Shown one piece after another: positions 770 to 36,410 of a stretch of 64,000 nucleotides of DNA. The DNA comes from Malacoraja senta (taxonomy: Eukaryota): assembly GCA_038087875.1 (NCBI GenBank), contig CM075978.1:19282001-19346000 (forward strand), in the 5' to 3' direction. Both the position numbers and the translations under genes were made by a program. The notes beneath the pieces were generated by a model. That model saw only the letters and a list, made by a program, of their open reading frames with translations. It was not told the origin of the DNA and made no database searches. Position 1 is the first letter of the stretch. Every line of letters begins with the position of its first letter.

Positions 770-1495
770 GGGCGCCGCACGAGGGCAGCCTCGCCAACAA
801 TCTGTCTGTCTACGTCTTTTTGTTATTTTGAGTGTTATTAAAGTACATGTTAATGTTCTCTGGTTTGTTTTATGTGGGGAGTGGAGGGGAAACTTTTTTT
901 CCCCCCCCAATCTCTTATCTTGCCAGAGATGCAATTGTATTACGGATTGTATCTCCGGTCGCTCTGTGGCCCAATATCATGGAGCTGGAGGCCTTGCTCA
1001 GGACTGAATTTGAGCCCACCGTGGGGACATGGACTTACCATCGGAGCCAATCCTTTGCCTGGGATCGACGTTCCAATCGCGGCCTGTGGAATTCACCATC
1101 GAGGAGCTCGCAGTCTCGGGTAGAGACCGATATCGGGAAGCTCCAAATGACGCAGAACGTTTCGCCAGGCCCGACCCGGGGTCAGAGCTGAGATTCCCCT
1201 CCCAATGCAGGAGCTTGATCACCCCGGCGCGGAGGGCCCGATCTCCGGCTACGGCCTACACAATAGATCGCCCCATCAACGGAAGGCTCAAGGCCCCCGA
1301 CTGCGAGAGAACAAAAAAGAGAGGATTGAATTTTTTTTTCACGTTCCATCACAGTGAGGAATGTGGAGGTCACTGCTTATGTTAAAATGTATTGTGTGTT
1401 CTGTTGCTTTTTATTGGTATGACTGTATGGCAAATGAAATTCCTCGTATGTTGCAAAACATACTTGGCTAATAAAGCATTATTATGATTATGATG
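770..1495 (+). mobile_element. Structured GC-rich non-autonomous retroposon, copy 1
   Basis: GGCGCC..GGCAGCCTCGCC head, T-rich tract, GGGGGAAAC, hairpin 923-958, CATCGnGGAGC modules, TTCCATCACAGTG motif, LINE-type tail with AATAAA and short (ATTATG) repeats. Confidence 0.75.
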
Positions 1496-1759
1496 TTGAG
1501 TCAATGTAACCCACAATATATTACTGACAAATAAGCATTTTAAACATTCAGCAATTACTGAATTCATAAAGATAATAAACCATTCCAAATTGAACTGCTG
1601 GCACTAAGTTTACATAGAAGACTAGAAACACAAACTGGGCAGACACTATTTAATACAAATAGGTGCAAGGGAGAAAAATCGCAAGAATAGAAAATCTAAT
1701 TATTTACGAGGAAGCACAATTACCAAGGACCCAAGTGCCAAGTGCCAACTGCAGGAGTG

Positions 1760-2622
1760 GGGCGCCGTTGTATATGGCTGCTCTGCCTGCAGTCTGCCCT
1801 TTCACCCTTTTTTATTTTTAGTCCTGTTAGATCAAAATGTTTGTTGTAGGTCTTCTTTTATGTGGTGGGTGGGGTGAGGGGAAGGGGGAAACTTTATTTC
1901 TGCGGCTTTCCTCCGAATCGCATCTTCGTCCTCTCCGTGCGGCCTACCATCGGACTGGAGCGGCGTTTCCTGCCGGGACTGACCGGCCGGGACTACAGCT
2001 TCAGCGGCGGCACAGCGCTGGGACACCATCTCGGAGCGGGCGATGCCTTACCGGGTCGCCGTGCAGTAAGCTCCGGAGTGCTGTGACGCCAACTCCCAAT
2101 ATTGCGGAGCTGTGGCCGAGGGCGTCCAGCGGCACTGGATTTAGAACACCGCAGAGCCTGGGATCCGAGATCGCCAGAGTCGGAGCTCCAGCCAACGCGG
2201 CCCGAGGACCTCGGGTGCCGCTGTCTCCGGGGAGGGAGCAGCTGCTCCAGACATTTCCATGCCGCTGAGGACTTTTCACCCGACGCCGGTGTTCTATCTT
2301 CCCGGCAGGTGGGGCTATAACATCGGGCCGCCATTGCGGCGACTGGCTGCGGAGGCCTCAAATAGGCCCCGACCTCGGGTGGTCTAGGAGGAGGAGGAGG
2401 ACTGGACTTTTTGGTGCCTTCCCTCACAGTGGAAAGTGTTGATTCTGCTGTGGGGAGATGTTCATGTTGAATCCTATGGTGATTTGTGTATTTTTTCTTC
2501 TTCTTTTTTATTTTATATCGATGTATGGTAATCAAATTTTTTTTTTCCCTTTGTAAAGCACTTTGGCTTCAACATGATTTGATTTAAAAGTGCTATATAA
2601 ATAAAAATTACTTACTTACTTA
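1760..2622 (+). mobile_element. Structured GC-rich non-autonomous retroposon, copy 2 (L2-type tail)
   Basis: Same architecture; 3' hairpin 2422-2455; tail GTAAAGCACTTTG..AAAGTGCTATATAAATAAA plus (TTAC)n. Confidence 0.75.
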
Positions 2623-5132
2623 CTAGTCTTTGAAAATGGGAAGAAAAGCTGATAAAGTAATTAAATAAGTGTCCAGGATACTTAAATTGGCAAATGGTGG
2701 TTCTGAATACAAAAACAGCCATACTGCATCTTAAAAAATATCTAAGAATTGAAAGCACCTGGGATGTAGTGTATAGTTCGGATAAATGTAAAGATTCTAG
2801 CATGGATATAGAGGGTTTTCAAGCAAGATGCTAGGGATGAGCATGTTCAATTAAATGGAAAGATACAAGAGCAGTCCTAGTTCCCTACAGGGCAAAGAAG
2901 GTAAAGCAAAGACCTAAAATTCGGCTCTATTGAGCAAATTGAAAGAAATGTTCCTCCAATCCAGAAGGTCATAGATTTAAAACAATTTTCTGAATAGATG
3001 GGAGAAAATTGAGAAAAAAGTCTTCACGTAAGAATTGTGATCTGGAATATACAACCTGAAAAAAAGCAATGAACTAAATTCCAAATGAGTATTTAAGCCG
3101 GTCATTTGATTGCAGTTATCAGAGGACTAAACTGAACAGGTATGATTGCACACAAAACATTGACTTGACAATATAGTTAATTTAAAAAAATCTCAAATAT
3201 AACATGATCAAACAACTAATTCTGTTAAAACAAAACAAAGCAAGCACTGAACTGGATCACATGCAAATTTTTATAGCCAAAAATCAATTTCACAATTTGT
3301 GACAGAAAGCATTGCTCTGGTAGCCTTTTTAGAATGAGGTAGGAGGGAAAGAAAGATTAGGTACTGAAAATTGCCAGCCAAAACAATAGCTGATGAAACA
3401 AGAAAATCCATACACAACCAAACATGTGCCAAAGCAATGGCTGTCTGAGAGATTAGGTGGAAATGGGGTCGGTGTAGGTTCCTCTGCGCTTAATGACAGA
3501 GGAGAGCGATCGTAAGGTATCGTCAGCAGCAGTGTGGGCTACCAGGCCCTCCAAGCAGGACGAGGGAATAAAGGAAACAGTCATAACCACAAAACCGTAA
3601 TCTGGTGTGGATGAACCCTCGCAGGTCTTTCAAGTGCATGCGAGAGGGTATCAGCCAGGTGCATGTCCTTGCTACGTTTGTAGGTTAGAACAATGTCATA
3701 CTTCTGAAGCTGTAGCAACATCTGTTGAAGGCGTCCTGGAGAGGTGTGTATTGGTTTGTTCAAAATGCTGATTAGGGGTTGATGGTCAGTTTCAATCGTG
3801 ACCGTTTTCCCGAAGATAAACTCATTAAACCTCTTGCATGCGAAAACGACCGCTAGCAGTTCCTTTTCAATCTGGGCGTAGCGTTGTTCCGTGTTTGTCA
3901 TGGTGCGCGAAGCATAGGCAACAGGCCTGTTGCCGTCACCATCATCTTGGAGGCAAGCTGCTGCTAAACTGTACTGCGAGGTGTCACAAGTCAGTGTGAC
4001 CGGTAATTTAGCATTAAAGTAGGCGAGAGTGGGGGCACAAGACATCTGTTGTTTGAGAGTGTCAAACGCCCTCTGCTGTTGCTCATGCCAGGACCAAACA
4101 GTGTCTTTGTGGGTTAGCTGGCACAGTGTGGCCGATAGTTCACTGAAGTTTGGAATAAATTTCCCCAAATAATTTACCATGCCAAGGAATCTCTGCAGGC
4201 TGAGCACATCCGTGGGTGCTGGTAACTCGTTGATAGCAATGGTTTTTGATGGATTGGGTTTGAGGCCGTCTTCAGTGAACACATGGCCTACGTAGTTCAC
4301 CTAATTTACTCTGAATTTGCACTTTAGAGGGTTTAACTTGAGGTTGATTTCTTTAGCGCGGTCCAGAACCTTTTTTAAATTTGCGTCGTGTTTTCTTCAA
4401 TAGTTTGTCTAGCAACAAGGATATCATCAACTGCGATGGAGCATGGGTAACCTTCAAACAATTGTTCCATAGCGCGTTGAAATACTTCACTAGCAGAGCT
4501 TATGCTAAATGGCTTACGAAGAGATTTGTAATGTCCAAAGGGTGTGCTGAAGGTGGTTAACTTGGAGGAGTTTTGATCCAGGGCAATCTGCCAGAATGAA
4601 CTCTTGGCGGCTAGCACTGTGAATATAGTCACCTTGCCCAGCTGCGCTGCAATCTCTTCCACTGTGCGCATGGGATAGTGTGGTTGTTTAATGGCAGTGT
4701 TTAAAACTTTAGGATTGATGCAATTCCATATTTCTTACTTATACTTTTTTGTTGCTACTACCATGGTCGAGACCCAATCCGACGAGGGCAATCACACCCA
4801 TAGTCACCATTCTGTCGAGTTCACCTTGTACACGGTCCTGCATAGCATGGGCAATCCGGAGTGCCGGATGGACAACTGGGAGTACCACGGGGTCAGGCGT
4901 GATTGTGTGCTTGACAGGTAACCTGCCCAGCTAGTCGTCGAACAGACTTTTGTATTGTGTCAGGATTTGTTGAGTGAAGTCACATGTAGGAGACAGATGT
5001 ACTGAAGGTGACCAGACCCAGGTCAAAGTCAATTTTATTCATCATACACCCGACTTTGAAACGTATGTCCTCGAAAACCAGATGCAGTGAAATGAATTTG
5101 CCAGCAGCGATACACTTAGAAAGAACACACAA

Positions 5133-35345: not shown

Positions 35346-35640
35346 CAAAGGTCACAGTTTAAGGATAAAGGGTGGGCTATTTGGGACTGAGATGACAAAA
35401 AACTTTTTCACCCCAGAGAGTTGTGAATCTGTGGAATTCACTGCCACAGAAGGCAGTGGAGGCCAATTCACTGGATATTTTCAAAAGAGTTGGATTTAGC
35501 TCTTGGGGCTAAATGAATCACGGGATAATGGGAAAAGGCAGGAACAGGGTACTGATTTTAGATCAGCCATGATCATATTGAATGGCGGTGCTGGCTCGAA
35601 GGGCTGAATGGCCTCCTGCACCTATTTTCTATGTTTCTAC
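35346..35640 (+). mobile_element. CR1 3' end inserted in a Penelope-derived repeat
   Basis: GHSLRIKGG.F.TEM.KNFFT plus CR1 3' UTR; Penelope motif at ~35298 resumes at ~35645. Confidence 0.75.
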
Positions 35641-35709
35641 ATAGAGCCTGACCTGCTGTTCTTTCAGCACTTTGTTTTTTTACTCAAGATTCCGCCATTT
35701 GCAGTTTTT

Positions 35710-36410
35710 GGTGGCGGGAAGCGCCACCAGCAGTGGCTGCCTCGCCAACTGTCTGTCTATCCATTCTTCCTTTTTGTTGTTTTTAGTATGTGTTAAAGTT
35801 TGCTTTAGTGTCCCTTGGTTTGTTTGATGTGGGGCGGGGGGGTTGGGGGGAACTTTTTTTCAATCTTATACCTCGACGGAGATGTGATATTTTCCGTATC
35901 GTATCTCTGTCCCCACTGTGGCCTAACATCGTGAAGTTGGCGGCCTTTCCTGGAGACCGGCAGGCACTCCAAGCCACGGGACTCTGCGGGACTTTAACAT
36001 CGCGGAGCTTGCAATCCGTTTGCCGGGGATCGAAGCTCCAACCGCGGGACCTGTGGAATTTAACATTGTGAAACCCGCGGTCTCTGGTAAGAAGAGGCCG
36101 ACTCGAGAGCTCCATGTCGCAGAGAGAGATTCATCCGCCCCGACACGTGAGTTTCGATCACCCCGACGGGGGCTTCGATTGTCGGCTGCGGCGGCTTTGA
36201 TCGCCCCGGCTGCGGATGGTTTGACTGCCCCGACCACGGGAGAACTAAGAGGAAGATTGAACTTTATTGCCTTCCATCACAGTGAGGAATATGGAATGTT
36301 TATGTTAACTCTTATGTGGTTGTGTGTCTTGTTGCTTTTCACTTAGTGTGGCTGTATGGTAACTCAAATTTCACTGTGCCTTAACTGTGACAATAAACTG
36401 ACCTTATCCT
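35710..36410 (+). mobile_element. Structured GC-rich retroposon, copy 5
   Basis: Head GCGCC..GGCTGCCTCGCC, stem 35876-35910, GGCCTAACATCG, TGCCTTCCATCACAGTG, tail ATTTCACTGTGCCT..GTGACAATAAA. Confidence 0.75.

Follow-up and report, generated by a model that had tools for sequence, protein, structure and literature searches.

The 64-kb window considered here (the whole stretch of DNA that was analysed) carries several diverged repeats whose ends resemble those of different LINEs, and this raises the question of whether they belong to one retroposon family that has exchanged its tails. The skate genome does hold a genuine family of ORF-less, LINE-dependent retroposons of 0.69-0.87 kb. The complete reading, in which a 5' module is joined to a Rex1-like 3' module and the tail has been switched between LINEs, is considered quite likely. 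The material consisted of the window and 92.6 kb of other DNA (L001-L004 and L007), 156.6 kb altogether, with L004 and L007 taken from the little skate, Leucoraja erinacea (GCA_028641065.1). It contains 14 copies or fragments, six (c1-c6) in the window and eight in L001-L004 and L007.

All six window copies proposed in a preliminary description are present, with limits that proved exact or off by no more than about 10 nt. In blastn comparisons, c1 (767-1495) matches c6 (35710-36397) at 66% over 697 columns (E 3e-35) and c2 (1750-2624) matches c4 (13108-13817) at 68% over 585 columns (E 3e-36); c5 (25876-26694) and c3 (6995-7217, minus strand) are tied in through the head/hairpin A region and a CACAGTG hairpin. 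An nhmmer profile built from the six copies matched only those six in the 64 kb, and the surroundings of the copies are unrelated to each other.

Each element is composed of two modules, a 5' one of about 550 nt and a 3' one of about 150 nt. The 5' module opens with a GC-rich head, after which come a T-rich tract, a G-run that terminates in GGGGGAAAC, the conserved hairpin A of 12 bp, and a CpG-island-like body dotted with (A/T)ACATCGCGGAGC motifs. At the end of the 3' module there is a short stem-loop tail with AATAAA, which in most copies precedes a brief repeat, either tandem or imperfect. This common layout, as claimed previously, is visible in the alignments, except that c4 is headless and c3 comprises only the first ~220 nt.

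Copies c1, c2, c5 and c6, all on the plus strand, are full length. In c1, the head (~767-815) and T-rich tract are followed by GGGGAAAC at ~887, hairpin A (923-958), the CpG-rich body (~960-1330), a degraded hairpin B (1344-1389), and an X-type Rex1-like tail (1438-1475) with an imperfect ATTAT/GATTAT repeat up to 1495. The c2 copy has its head at ~1750-1800, a partly deleted hairpin A, the body at ~1900-2400 and hairpin B at 2419-2458; its end combines a remnant of a Y-type tail start, GGTAATCAAATTT, with an L2-type tail (2553-2605) and (TTAC)n (2608-2624). In c5, the head starts at ~25876 and leads into the T-rich tract, with GGGGGAAAC at ~26008; hairpin A spans 26035-26069 (folded as 13 bp), the body ~26070-26500 and hairpin B 26513-26555, and the tail closes with ATGACAATAAA at ~26655, ahead of (ATTCT)n at 26660-26694. 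The c6 copy shows the head (35710-35760), hairpin A (35876-35910), body (~35910-36260), only the 5' arm of hairpin B, and a 3' module alignable to the Rex1-like 3'UTR, whose Y-type tail ends at 36397 without a microsatellite. The plus-strand c4 is 5'-truncated, starting just ahead of hairpin A (13125-13160) and thus without head and T-tract; it retains a body, in which four AACATCGCGGAGC-like modules are found, then hairpin B (13641-13680) and a Z-type Rex1-like tail (13749-13790) followed by (AAATC)n. Finally, c3 stops after the head, T-rich tract, G-run and hairpin A (7013-7047), and from its breakpoint at GGCCTAAT onward the DNA is GC-rich and unrelated. This copy sits within a Ty3/gypsy-like element.

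Both hairpins are maintained through compensatory changes. In hairpin A, 96.7% of cells are paired and both sides have changed in 6 of the 12 pairs, a result equalled by none of 500 shuffles; the wobble-pair asymmetry of this hairpin gives no consistent preference for the sense strand. Of 10 copies, 8 can form hairpin B, also claimed as a common feature, and these include compensatory variants; c6 has lost it and c1 has it in degraded form. Eleven occurrences of the AACATCGCGGAGC module were counted at up to 2 mismatches, always on the plus strand and always within copies (chance expectation, 0.42); no true VNTR was found in the copies. The GC content of the bodies is 59-66% and their CpG observed/expected ratio 0.79-1.03, the values for the window being 41.7% and 0.54. 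The element is non-coding, because indels between copies are mostly off-frame (only 7 of 36 are multiples of three) and mismatches are spread evenly across codon phases (51/60/44).

The last ~150 nt of the element align with the complete 3'UTR of a Rex1-like LINE. For instance, global alignment of the Rex1-like LINE 3'UTR from L004 with this part of c6, L004s and L001s gives z-scores of 5.3, 4.7 and 7.4, respectively. X, Y and Z tails stand after Rex1-like ORF2 C-termini, and L2 tails after L2 C-termini. The tail of c1 matches the X-type tail at 62709-62742 (z 7.0, tail-LINE z-scores being relative to shuffles), which is followed by a (TTCA)-like repeat and belongs to a Rex1-like 3' end of another lineage (62709-62942, minus strand; C-terminal motif RHKNSFIPRAV at 62910-62942). 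The c4 tail matches two Z-type ends, 45145-45178 and 58362-58395, both on the minus strand (z 5.3). The former, with (ACTTG)n, terminates a Rex1-like LINE (45122-47889, minus strand) that encodes an endonuclease, RT and a C-terminal ALKBH8_N-type motif, is cut ~15 codons into ORF2, and represents a candidate helper lineage for c4; the latter is part of a second Rex1-like 3' end (58362-58602, minus strand; C-terminal motif RFRNSFFPTAI at 58570-58602). The Rex1 RT of the window shows 93% identity to a cluster with a Leucoraja erinacea protein, which identifies the host as a skate.

The c6 tail resembles, as judged by eye and unscored, a Y-type fragment at 26885-26930 on the minus strand (TTTCACCGTGCC..GCGACAATAAA plus (TAAAC)n). 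No coding sequence lies upstream of this fragment, and the same tail type is found on a Rex1-like LINE in L004, whose 3'UTR matches L001s, c6 and L004s with z 6.8, 5.3 and 5.1. The c2 tail matches two L2 ends at 78% over 54 nt (E 2.5e-5 and 8.8e-5): 19760-19811, with (TTA)n, in a 3' end at 19597-19826 (plus strand) with an L2-type ORF2 C-terminus (..FKTSIKTHLY..), and 48277-48325, with (GCCTT)n, in another at 47960-48340 (plus strand; ..FKSRLKTFLF.. at 48047-48076). Thus, LINE counterparts, which had been claimed for four tails, were obtained for those of c1, c2, c4 and c6, but the c5 tail has none in the 156.6 kb examined; its W type is only loosely like that of L7b, also devoid of a LINE partner. 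X, Y and Z are different lineages within one Rex1-like group, and a switch across superfamilies is seen only with the L2 tail. Given a plan common to X, Y and Z (AATTYC..stem-loop..AATAAA), divergence and not replacement could explain some of what distinguishes them; yet each fits its own LINE lineage best.

A tree built from tail-free bodies is incongruent with tail identity. The first clade, ((c4,L003)0.99,L004)0.81 plus c2 (clade support 0.99), carries tails Z (c4), na (L003), Y (L004) and L2 (c2); the second, ((c1,L7a)0.98,c6)0.93, carries X, X and Y; and the third, (c5,(L7b,L7c))1.0, carries W, W and none. In c2, the first 13 nt of the Y tail are retained ahead of the L2 tail. This arrangement is found again at an unrelated little-skate locus (L7d, L007 5785-6015), at 75% over 249 columns that cover the body end, hairpin B, the junction, the L2 tail and the same (TTAC)n. 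The X form is also present at L007 15670-16410 (minus strand) and in a 71-nt fragment in L002, and the Y form in c6, L004 and L001. Members per tail class are few, and Z was seen once, but one-off chimeras are excluded for the three multi-copy classes (L2, X and Y). It is likewise excluded that every copy arose from its own LINE by internal deletion, given that the ~550-nt 5' parts are homologous across differently tailed copies; such shared 5' parts under different tails therefore indicate at most one origin, followed by tail exchange. Since the tails conflict with the body tree and the L2, X and Y forms recur, the repeated switching of helper LINEs put forward in the preliminary description, including a change from Rex1 to L2, is supported. 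The family can be regarded as a genomic parasite that changes helpers.

AATAAA is found at the copy ends, followed in 5 of 6 by a short tandem or imperfect repeat; no target-site duplications were found at the copies, and c4, L001, L7d and the 71-nt fragment in L002 are 5'-truncated. These are marks of CR1-group LINE retroposition, and mobilisation by LINEs with matching tails can be inferred. The RNA would be copied to new sites by the RT of whichever CR1-group LINE recognises its tail. New subfamilies would arise when the last 35-55 nt are exchanged for those of a different LINE lineage (L2 or one of three Rex1-like ones), most likely by template switching during reverse transcription, the chimera then being amplified.

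Among the alternatives, an ordinary Pol III SINE, whose tRNA-, 5S- or 7SL-derived head has diverged past recognition, would account for the SINE-like architecture of head, body and LINE tail, and a weak A-box-like CAGCAGTGG can be seen by eye in the c5 and c6 heads. However, as claimed previously, there is no sign of a Pol III head: ARAGORN detected no tRNA in the copies, no Rfam family matched them (c5 and c6 not even at E up to 10), and no B box is present. Moreover, 690-870 nt is long for a Pol III unit, and T5-T8 runs are met 38-75 nt into each full-length copy (three subfamilies), with several more downstream; the same oligo-T argument has been applied to SINEU elements (PMC4494074). Pol III cannot have produced the full-length RNA, and such a SINE is very improbable. 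By exclusion, Pol II most likely makes the full-length RNA, which might start from an internal promoter in the 5' module/CpG-rich body or result from read-through, and AATAAA would then be its poly(A) signal. Hardly more credible are retropseudogenes of one host Pol II gene (lncRNA or UTR) that ends in a LINE fragment and was passively copied. In favour of such a gene, the 5' module has the character of a CpG island and no traced source, and an internal promoter is not demonstrable. On the other hand, the body subfamilies are deep (45-83% identity), with several insertions each and their own tails, which requires several long-lived source copies. In addition, CpG stays near expectation although subfamilies have diverged by 25-50%, and transitions to transversions stand at 79:76, so that old lineages with fairly young insertions fit better than one decaying burst.

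A more serious, although still doubtful, alternative is a bipartite non-autonomous LINE, in which internal deletion of a Rex1-like element left 5'UTR and 3'UTR and tails were exchanged later. It differs from the preferred reading solely in the source of the 5' module, which would be a Rex1 5'UTR with an internal Pol II promoter; if so, the family would be a bipartite LINE and not of independent origin. The 3' ~150 nt are indeed an entire Rex1-like 3'UTR, and because Rex1 lacks ORF1, a 5'UTR-3'UTR element would be a simple deletion product. LINEs of this kind are thought to be Pol II-transcribed (PMC5786205), and repeated subunits near the 5'UTR of some ORF1-less CR1-group elements (PMC13343379) recall the AACATCGCGGAGC-like modules. 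However, the module is absent from three LINE 5' regions (L002 3594-4009, L001 1-150 and L004 25600-25800), and the profile finds the head only in the retroposons within 156 kb, a weak argument as LINEs there are almost all 5'-truncated. Furthermore, as of 2018 ORF-less bipartite derivatives were known only from RTE, Ingi, Vingi and R2 (PMC5786205). The L002 region corresponds to a CR1 with an esterase ORF1.

The principle of helper switching is already known, and the form seen in this family is probably undescribed. Tail exchange among SINEs (PMC5786205) and multiple LINE partners for SINEs (PMC11481361) have been documented; as in the skate family, the body persists, the LINE-derived 3' tail is swapped, and subfamilies rely on different LINEs. 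Those SINEs, however, carry Pol III heads derived from tRNA or 5S and mostly stay below 500 bp, whereas the skate element has no small-RNA head, contains Pol III terminators throughout and measures 0.7-0.9 kb. Its body is a CpG-rich segment with two conserved hairpins. The crocodilian SINEU elements (Kojima 2015, PMC4494074) are likewise short non-coding retroposons amid genomes dominated by CR1-group LINEs, and because of internal oligo-T they are not Pol III units, their transcription mode being unresolved (PMC4494074). Nevertheless, their heads are U1 or U2 snRNA, while the skate element is longer and has no snRNA/Rfam match.

Bipartite LINEs (Bov-A, RTESINE/WALLSI3, RIME, NARTc and Vingi derivatives) are also ORF-less, with LINE ends and presumed Pol II transcription, and the skate 3' module is likewise a full LINE 3'UTR. 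They are defined by a 5' part from the same LINE and keep to that parent, the clades reported for them (PMC5786205) not including Rex1 or L2; in contrast, the skate 5' module is unmatched in the LINE 5' regions compared and the family switches partners. SVA (primates) and Sadhu (Arabidopsis) are non-coding retroposons, 0.9-2 kb long and either composite or unclassifiable, that LINEs mobilise in trans; SVA is Pol II-transcribed and Sadhu has no recognisable promoter (PMC4494074). The internal part of SVA is GC-rich, like the skate body, although the latter lacks a true VNTR. Both rely on L1 by way of a poly(A) tail, that is, on relaxed recognition, while the specific CR1-group stem-loop tails and terminal microsatellites of the skate family suggest a stringent mode. 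Stringent tail recognition was reportedly shown for UnaL2/UnaSINE1 by Kajikawa and Okada in 2002.

With respect to the assembly, none of the six copies contacts a gap, and the retroposon finding is independent of sequence continuity across the gaps of the window. The gap at 5133-5820 lies within a tandem array with a period of ~466 bp, 1.2 kb past the c3 breakpoint, and those at 8351-8528 and 9125-9256 flank a perfect 16-bp x 36.5 array.

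When the six segments occupied by the retroposon copies of the window (c1 to c6) are compared with the whole window by blastn, c1 (767-1495) matches c6 (35710-36397) with 66% identity over 697 columns (E 3e-35) and c2 (1750-2624) matches c4 (13108-13817) with 68% over 585 columns (E 3e-36). Both c5 (25876-26694) and c3 (6995-7217, minus strand) are tied in through the region of the head and hairpin A and through the CACAGTG hairpin. An nhmmer profile built on the six copies recovers these copies alone within the 64-kb window. The multiple alignment shows one order of parts: a GC-rich head, a T-rich tract, a G-run with GGGGGAAAC at its end, hairpin A, GGCCTAACATCG, the GC-rich body, hairpin B and the tail. 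The module AACATCGCGGAGC occurs 11 times with up to two mismatches (0.42 expected by chance), always on the plus strand and always within copies. The 5' boundaries of the window copies are placed with a precision of about 10 nt, and none of these copies touches an assembly gap; continuity across the gaps is immaterial to the finding. The common layout of six copies proposed in the preliminary description is thus confirmed by blastn, alignment and profile, except that c4 is 5'-truncated, without head or T-rich tract, and c3 comprises only the first ~220 nt. Five of the six copies lie on the plus strand within 36 kb (770-36410), clustered and co-oriented; likewise, a little-skate semaphorin gene contains four copies within 21 kb (locus L007, 1-21306), three of them on its own strand. 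Both sets of numbers are too small for a test.

CpG-island-like bodies, judged by GC content and CpG observed/expected, are located at 960-1330, 1900-2400, 13160-13630, 26070-26500 and 35910-36260. The bodies have a GC content of 59-66% and a CpG observed/expected ratio of 0.79-1.03 (0.84-1.03 at the positions just given), the values for the window being 41.7% and 0.54; therefore each insertion brings a CpG-island-like block of ~400 bp. CpG is near expectation although the subfamilies diverge by 25-50%, which suggests that the source lineages are old and that the insertions are relatively recent or not methylated. The copies finish in AATAAA, followed in five of the six by a short tandem or imperfect repeat, and carry no poly(A). 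Tandem arrays in the bodies were searched with TRF and the only one found is a 24-nt x 2.1 repeat in c6. An SVA-like composite was rejected because it would have a VNTR core and end in a poly(A) tail for use by L1 rather than in AATAAA.

The last ~150 nt of the element, which begin with the 5' arm of hairpin B and close with AATAAA, can be aligned over their length with the complete 3'UTR of a Rex1-like LINE. Global alignments of these 3' modules with the 3'UTR of such a LINE at a Leucoraja erinacea locus (L004, 19576-19752) give z scores of 5.3 for c6, 4.7 for the copy at the same locus and 7.4 for the copy at locus L001. The retroposon is therefore bipartite, consisting of a 5' module of ~550 nt and a LINE 3'UTR module.

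The window contains a Rex1-like LINE at 45122-47889 (minus strand), with endonuclease, reverse transcriptase (RT) and a C-terminal ALKBH8_N-type motif. In its RT part, this LINE reaches 93% identity with a protein cluster to which Leucoraja erinacea XP_055520836.1 belongs, and ~60% with many proteins of teleosts; the window is accordingly skate DNA. The label Rex1-like follows from how the element is built, with the C-terminal motif, with AATAAA followed by a microsatellite and without a visible ORF1, and not from a clade phylogeny. Two further 3' ends with a C-terminus of the same kind are present at 58362-58602 and 62709-62942 (both minus), and L2 3' ends with a typical L2 C-terminus at 19597-19826 and 47960-48340 (both plus). 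The CR1 group has three main divisions, Rex1, CR1 and L2; Rex1, which has no ORF1, is most abundant in rays, and among vertebrates it is rays and skates that carry the heaviest Rex1 load, CR1-group LINEs accounting for 22-34% of their genome (PMC13343379).

Four tail types can be assigned to LINE partners. The X tail of c1 (AATTCCTYGT..ACATACTTGGCYAATAAA) matches the LINE at 62.7k with z 7.0 (other copies, 2.0 at most), and the Z tail of c4 (TTTCRTTGTC..ATGACAATAAA) matches the LINEs at 45k, at 58k and at L001 with z 5.3, 5.3 and 4.1, respectively. The Y tail (TTTCACYGYRC..GTGACAATAAA), present in c6 and in the copies at L004 and L001, matches the Rex1-like LINE at L004 18900-19752 (z 5.1-6.8), in which RT and C-terminus lie upstream of the tail. 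The L2 tail of c2 (GTAAAGCACTTTG..GTGCTATATAAATAAA plus (TTAC)n) is 78% identical over 54 nt to both L2 ends of the window (E 2.5e-5 and 8.8e-5). A fragment at 26.9k is a Y-type tail devoid of upstream coding sequence. For the tail type of c5 and of L7b, one of the L007 copies (W), no partner was found among the LINEs examined, and these two tails resemble each other only loosely. Four tail-to-LINE matches, as previously suggested, are thus seen, in c1, c2, c4 and c6. Each tail class has its own form of a small stem-loop ahead of AATAAA. In the UnaL2/UnaSINE1 pair the cognate reverse transcriptase reads the tail, and class-specific stem-loops are what would be expected by analogy if the same held here. 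A literature search on the motifs of the retroposon gave chance matches only in the text accessible to it; among them is a printed Raja erinacea sequence, the X-tail core ACATACTTGGC being found through the full-text index in PMC2192082 (J Exp Med 1995, genomic clones of light-chain genes), where it may or may not belong to a copy of the X-type LINE or of the retroposon.

A profile search of 92.6 kb of other DNA revealed eight further copies or fragments. Part of these loci was reached through chance ORFs of the retroposon, since a profile of the c2 and c4 ORFs run against 1.84 billion representatives matched two proteins, P0133 and P0135, through which L004 and L003 were found; LINE proteins led to host contigs in metagenome assemblies and to two little-skate loci. 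The copy at L001 2657-3500 is 5'-truncated with a Y-like tail, that at L004 15853-16580 is full length with a Y tail, and that at L003 505-1034 is 82% identical to c4 over the body and 83% with the tail region. A 71-nt fragment at L002 14335-14405 (minus) repeats the body-tail junction of c1 and its X tail. Locus L007 carries four copies: L7a is c1-like with an X tail, L7b and L7c are c5-like, and L7d (5785-6015, plus), 5'-truncated and with a c2-like tail, is 75% identical to c2 over 249 columns that span the body end, hairpin B, the junction, the L2 tail and an identical (TTAC)n. Since they recur at other loci, the X, Y and L2 combinations each exist in several copies and cannot be one-off chimeras, which would have refuted the preliminary reading; the Z combination is known from c4 alone. 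No further copies were detected in L005, L006 and L008, where all LINEs are truncated. Searches with a two-block pattern of the retroposon against metagenome, viral and prokaryote contigs and with the c2 antisense ORF as protein query gave no match, and an ORF profile wider than c2 plus c4 gave no additional ones.

Two features of these loci deserve mention. P0133 (L004 10001-16407, Leucoraja erinacea CM054008.1) is a THAP-domain gene model ending in the retroposon copy, from which its last ~95 codons, a splice acceptor (~16108 of L004) and the stop codon derive; this ending is either an exonisation of the retroposon or an annotation artefact. L002, a host contig from a metagenome assembly in ENA, contains at 4009-7398 a CR1-type LINE that appears to be complete, with an ORF1 for an esterase (GDSL lipase-like), endonuclease and RT; its 5' region shows no resemblance to the retroposon.

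The tail classes, several of them multi-copy, are incongruent with a tree of the bodies built from the sequence up to hairpin B, tails left out. The clade c2 + (L004 + (c4 + L003)), with a support of 0.99, combines L2, Y and Z tails, and c6 + (c1 + L7a), with 0.93, combines Y, X and X. The clade c5 + (L7b + L7c), with 1.0, carries W, W and no tail, and L001, which stands alone and has no support value, a Y tail. The Y tail is thus found in three of the four body groups, and c2 keeps the initial 13 nt of a Y tail ahead of its L2 tail. The simplest reading of both facts is that an ancestral Y tail would have been replaced at least four times, by X, Z, W and L2. The L2 tail of c2 took the place of the Y tail rather than arriving as a nested L2 insertion, because the rest of the Y tail is absent after (TTAC)n. 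Together with the presence of the L2-tailed form at two loci, the contrast between body tree and tails supports the idea put forward earlier that helpers have been switched, even between clades, including a change from Rex1 to L2. With the start of the old tail still in place in c2, the c2/L7d subfamily preserves an intermediate stage of a switch from one LINE superfamily to another.

Both hairpins are maintained by compensatory changes. Hairpin A has a 12-bp stem and a T-rich loop. Its covariation was counted in a clean alignment of five window copies, in which 96.7% of the cells are paired and changes occur on both sides in 6 of the 12 pairs; this count was retained because bulges shift the register in the 11-sequence alignment, and the remaining copies were folded singly. 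None of 500 shuffles, nor any slid register, approaches the real score. Taken copy by copy the hairpin folds well (z -4.3 to -6.6), and it is present in all 11 copies covering its region. With respect to strand, as judged by G-U pairs, c3 and c6 fold only in sense and L001, L7a and L7c fold better in antisense, so that these wobble pairs favour no single strand. Hairpin B, assigned to the common layout from the outset, is lost in c6 and decayed in c1, but folds in 8 of 10 copies, with the compensatory variants CAGTG/CACTG, CAGCG/CGCTG, CCACCACAG/CTGTGGTGG and CCC(T)CACAG/CTGTGGGG.

The GC-rich bodies contain long ORFs, but a coding element was rejected since the reading frames are not conserved. 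In the alignment of c1 and c6 only 7 of 36 indels are divisible by three and the mismatches are spread over the three phases as 51/60/44 (transitions:transversions, 79:76); the indel lengths and the phase-even mismatches indicate that the retroposon is non-coding. The head was also inspected by eye for an HDV-like ribozyme: GGC-UGCCUC-GCC resembles P3/L3, but the complementary P1 strand is absent, and the ribozyme reading was rejected.

The retroposon shares a LINE-derived 3' part with SINEs, but it falls outside the strict definition of a Pol III SINE, as it has no tRNA-, 5S- or 7SL-derived head and possesses internal oligo-T terminators. Both points had been anticipated from the sequence. 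ARAGORN detects no tRNA in the window, Rfam at gathering threshold gives no match in the whole window, and Rfam in E-value mode (up to 10) gives for c5 and c6 only chance matches and no small-RNA head family. The distance from the 5' end to the first run of at least five T (T5-T8) is 38-75 nt in each of the seven headed copies, and runs of T4 or longer number 4-11 per copy. The same oligo-T argument has been applied to SINEU in order to exclude Pol III (PMC4494074).

The flanks of the copies are unrelated between insertions. Four of them (c4, L001, L7d and the L002 fragment) are 5'-truncated, and target-site duplications were not found, the longest flank match being 4-6 nt. The 5' truncations, the short repeats after AATAAA and the lack of target-site duplications are marks of CR1-group target-primed reverse transcription. 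In the mechanism that we propose, the RNA of the retroposon would be mobilised in trans, each tail class by the LINE with the matching tail. A new tail could be gained by a template switch from LINE RNA to retroposon RNA near the 3' end, and the resulting chimera would then amplify; the 35-55 nt exchanged may be the stretch read by the reverse transcriptase. Full-length RNA would be a Pol II product, started at an internal promoter of the kind found in LINE 5'UTRs or arising by read-through, with AATAAA probably being the poly(A) signal of this transcript.

Different explanations can be considered for the origin of the element. That each copy is an internal deletion derivative of its own LINE, an objection foreseen in the preliminary description, is excluded by the homology of the bodies across copies, and a degenerate Pol III SINE, for which the LINE-derived 3' part would speak, is contradicted by the T-runs near the 5' end of headed copies. 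Retropseudogenes of a single host gene are hard to reconcile with the depth of the subfamily structure. The chief alternative bears on origin alone: if the 5' module were a Rex1 5'UTR, as may be the case, the retroposon would be a bipartite non-autonomous LINE, in agreement with the Rex1-like 3'UTR of its 3' part (z 4.7-7.4 with L004 19576-19752). Neither a CR1 5' region nor two other LINE 5' ends resemble the 5' module, and the Rex1-like copies examined are all 5'-truncated. ORF-less bipartite LINE derivatives have been reported for RTE, Ingi, Vingi and R2 only (PMC5786205).

A more tentative possibility, to which we give less than even weight, is that the 5' module, derived neither from a LINE nor from a small RNA, works as a Pol II transcription unit in its own right (head and CpG-island body) and has long been capturing CR1-group tails across Rex1 and L2. 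If such a Pol II unit exists, it would be a counterpart to the conserved-domain SINE superfamilies, and thousands of ~400-bp CpG-island-like segments, with splice sites and possible promoters, would be scattered in batoid genomes.

The principle of tail exchange is not new. CORE-, V-, Deu-, Ceph- and Meta-SINEs, among others, are established cases in which a conserved body has exchanged its LINE tail (PMC5786205, PMC11481361). Like the retroposon, these families combine one body with tails from different LINE partners; their heads, however, are of the Pol III type. Only a few retroposons are neither Pol III SINEs nor proven LINE derivatives, namely SINEU, SVA, Sadhu and SINEs whose GC-rich heads are of unknown origin (PMC4494074, PMC5786205). 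SINEU has a U1/U2 snRNA head, whereas Rfam scans of the window, c5 and c6 contain no snRNA family. The skate element would be a CR1-group addition to these few LINE-dependent retroposons, and RepeatModeler may well have produced an uncurated skate entry for it. At the level of sequence, it illustrates how a non-autonomous element outlives single helpers, the body being kept and only a tail of 35-55 nt swapped. Considering the CpG-island-like blocks and the P0133 case, it may also be relevant to gene regulation and annotation quality in elasmobranchs.

Copy c3 breaks off at 6995 into unrelated GC-rich DNA, and the assembly gap 5133-5820, which begins 1.2 kb further, is not the cause of the break because of this distance. 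The gap falls within a tandem array of ~466 bp period (5050-6500) with CRE-like TGACGTCA cores, whose units are present on both gap sides and which starts beside the breakpoint region. Two other gaps (8351-8528 and 9125-9256) flank a tandem repeat (16-bp x 36.5, GTTCGTGTTCGTGTGT) that is 100% perfect and located exactly between them (8529-9112), which looks like a collapsed or artificially regular piece of a longer satellite. A Ty3/gypsy-like LTR retrotransposon (3581-8041, minus) is split by c3 and ~1.9 kb of other DNA into a zinc-knuckle/protease region with a DTGA motif (7391-8041, minus) and an RT/RNase H region (3581-4671, minus). A second Ty3/gypsy-like pol (48371-51266, minus), with the zinc-binding and core domains of integrase and an RNase H-like domain, adjoins an L2 3' end.
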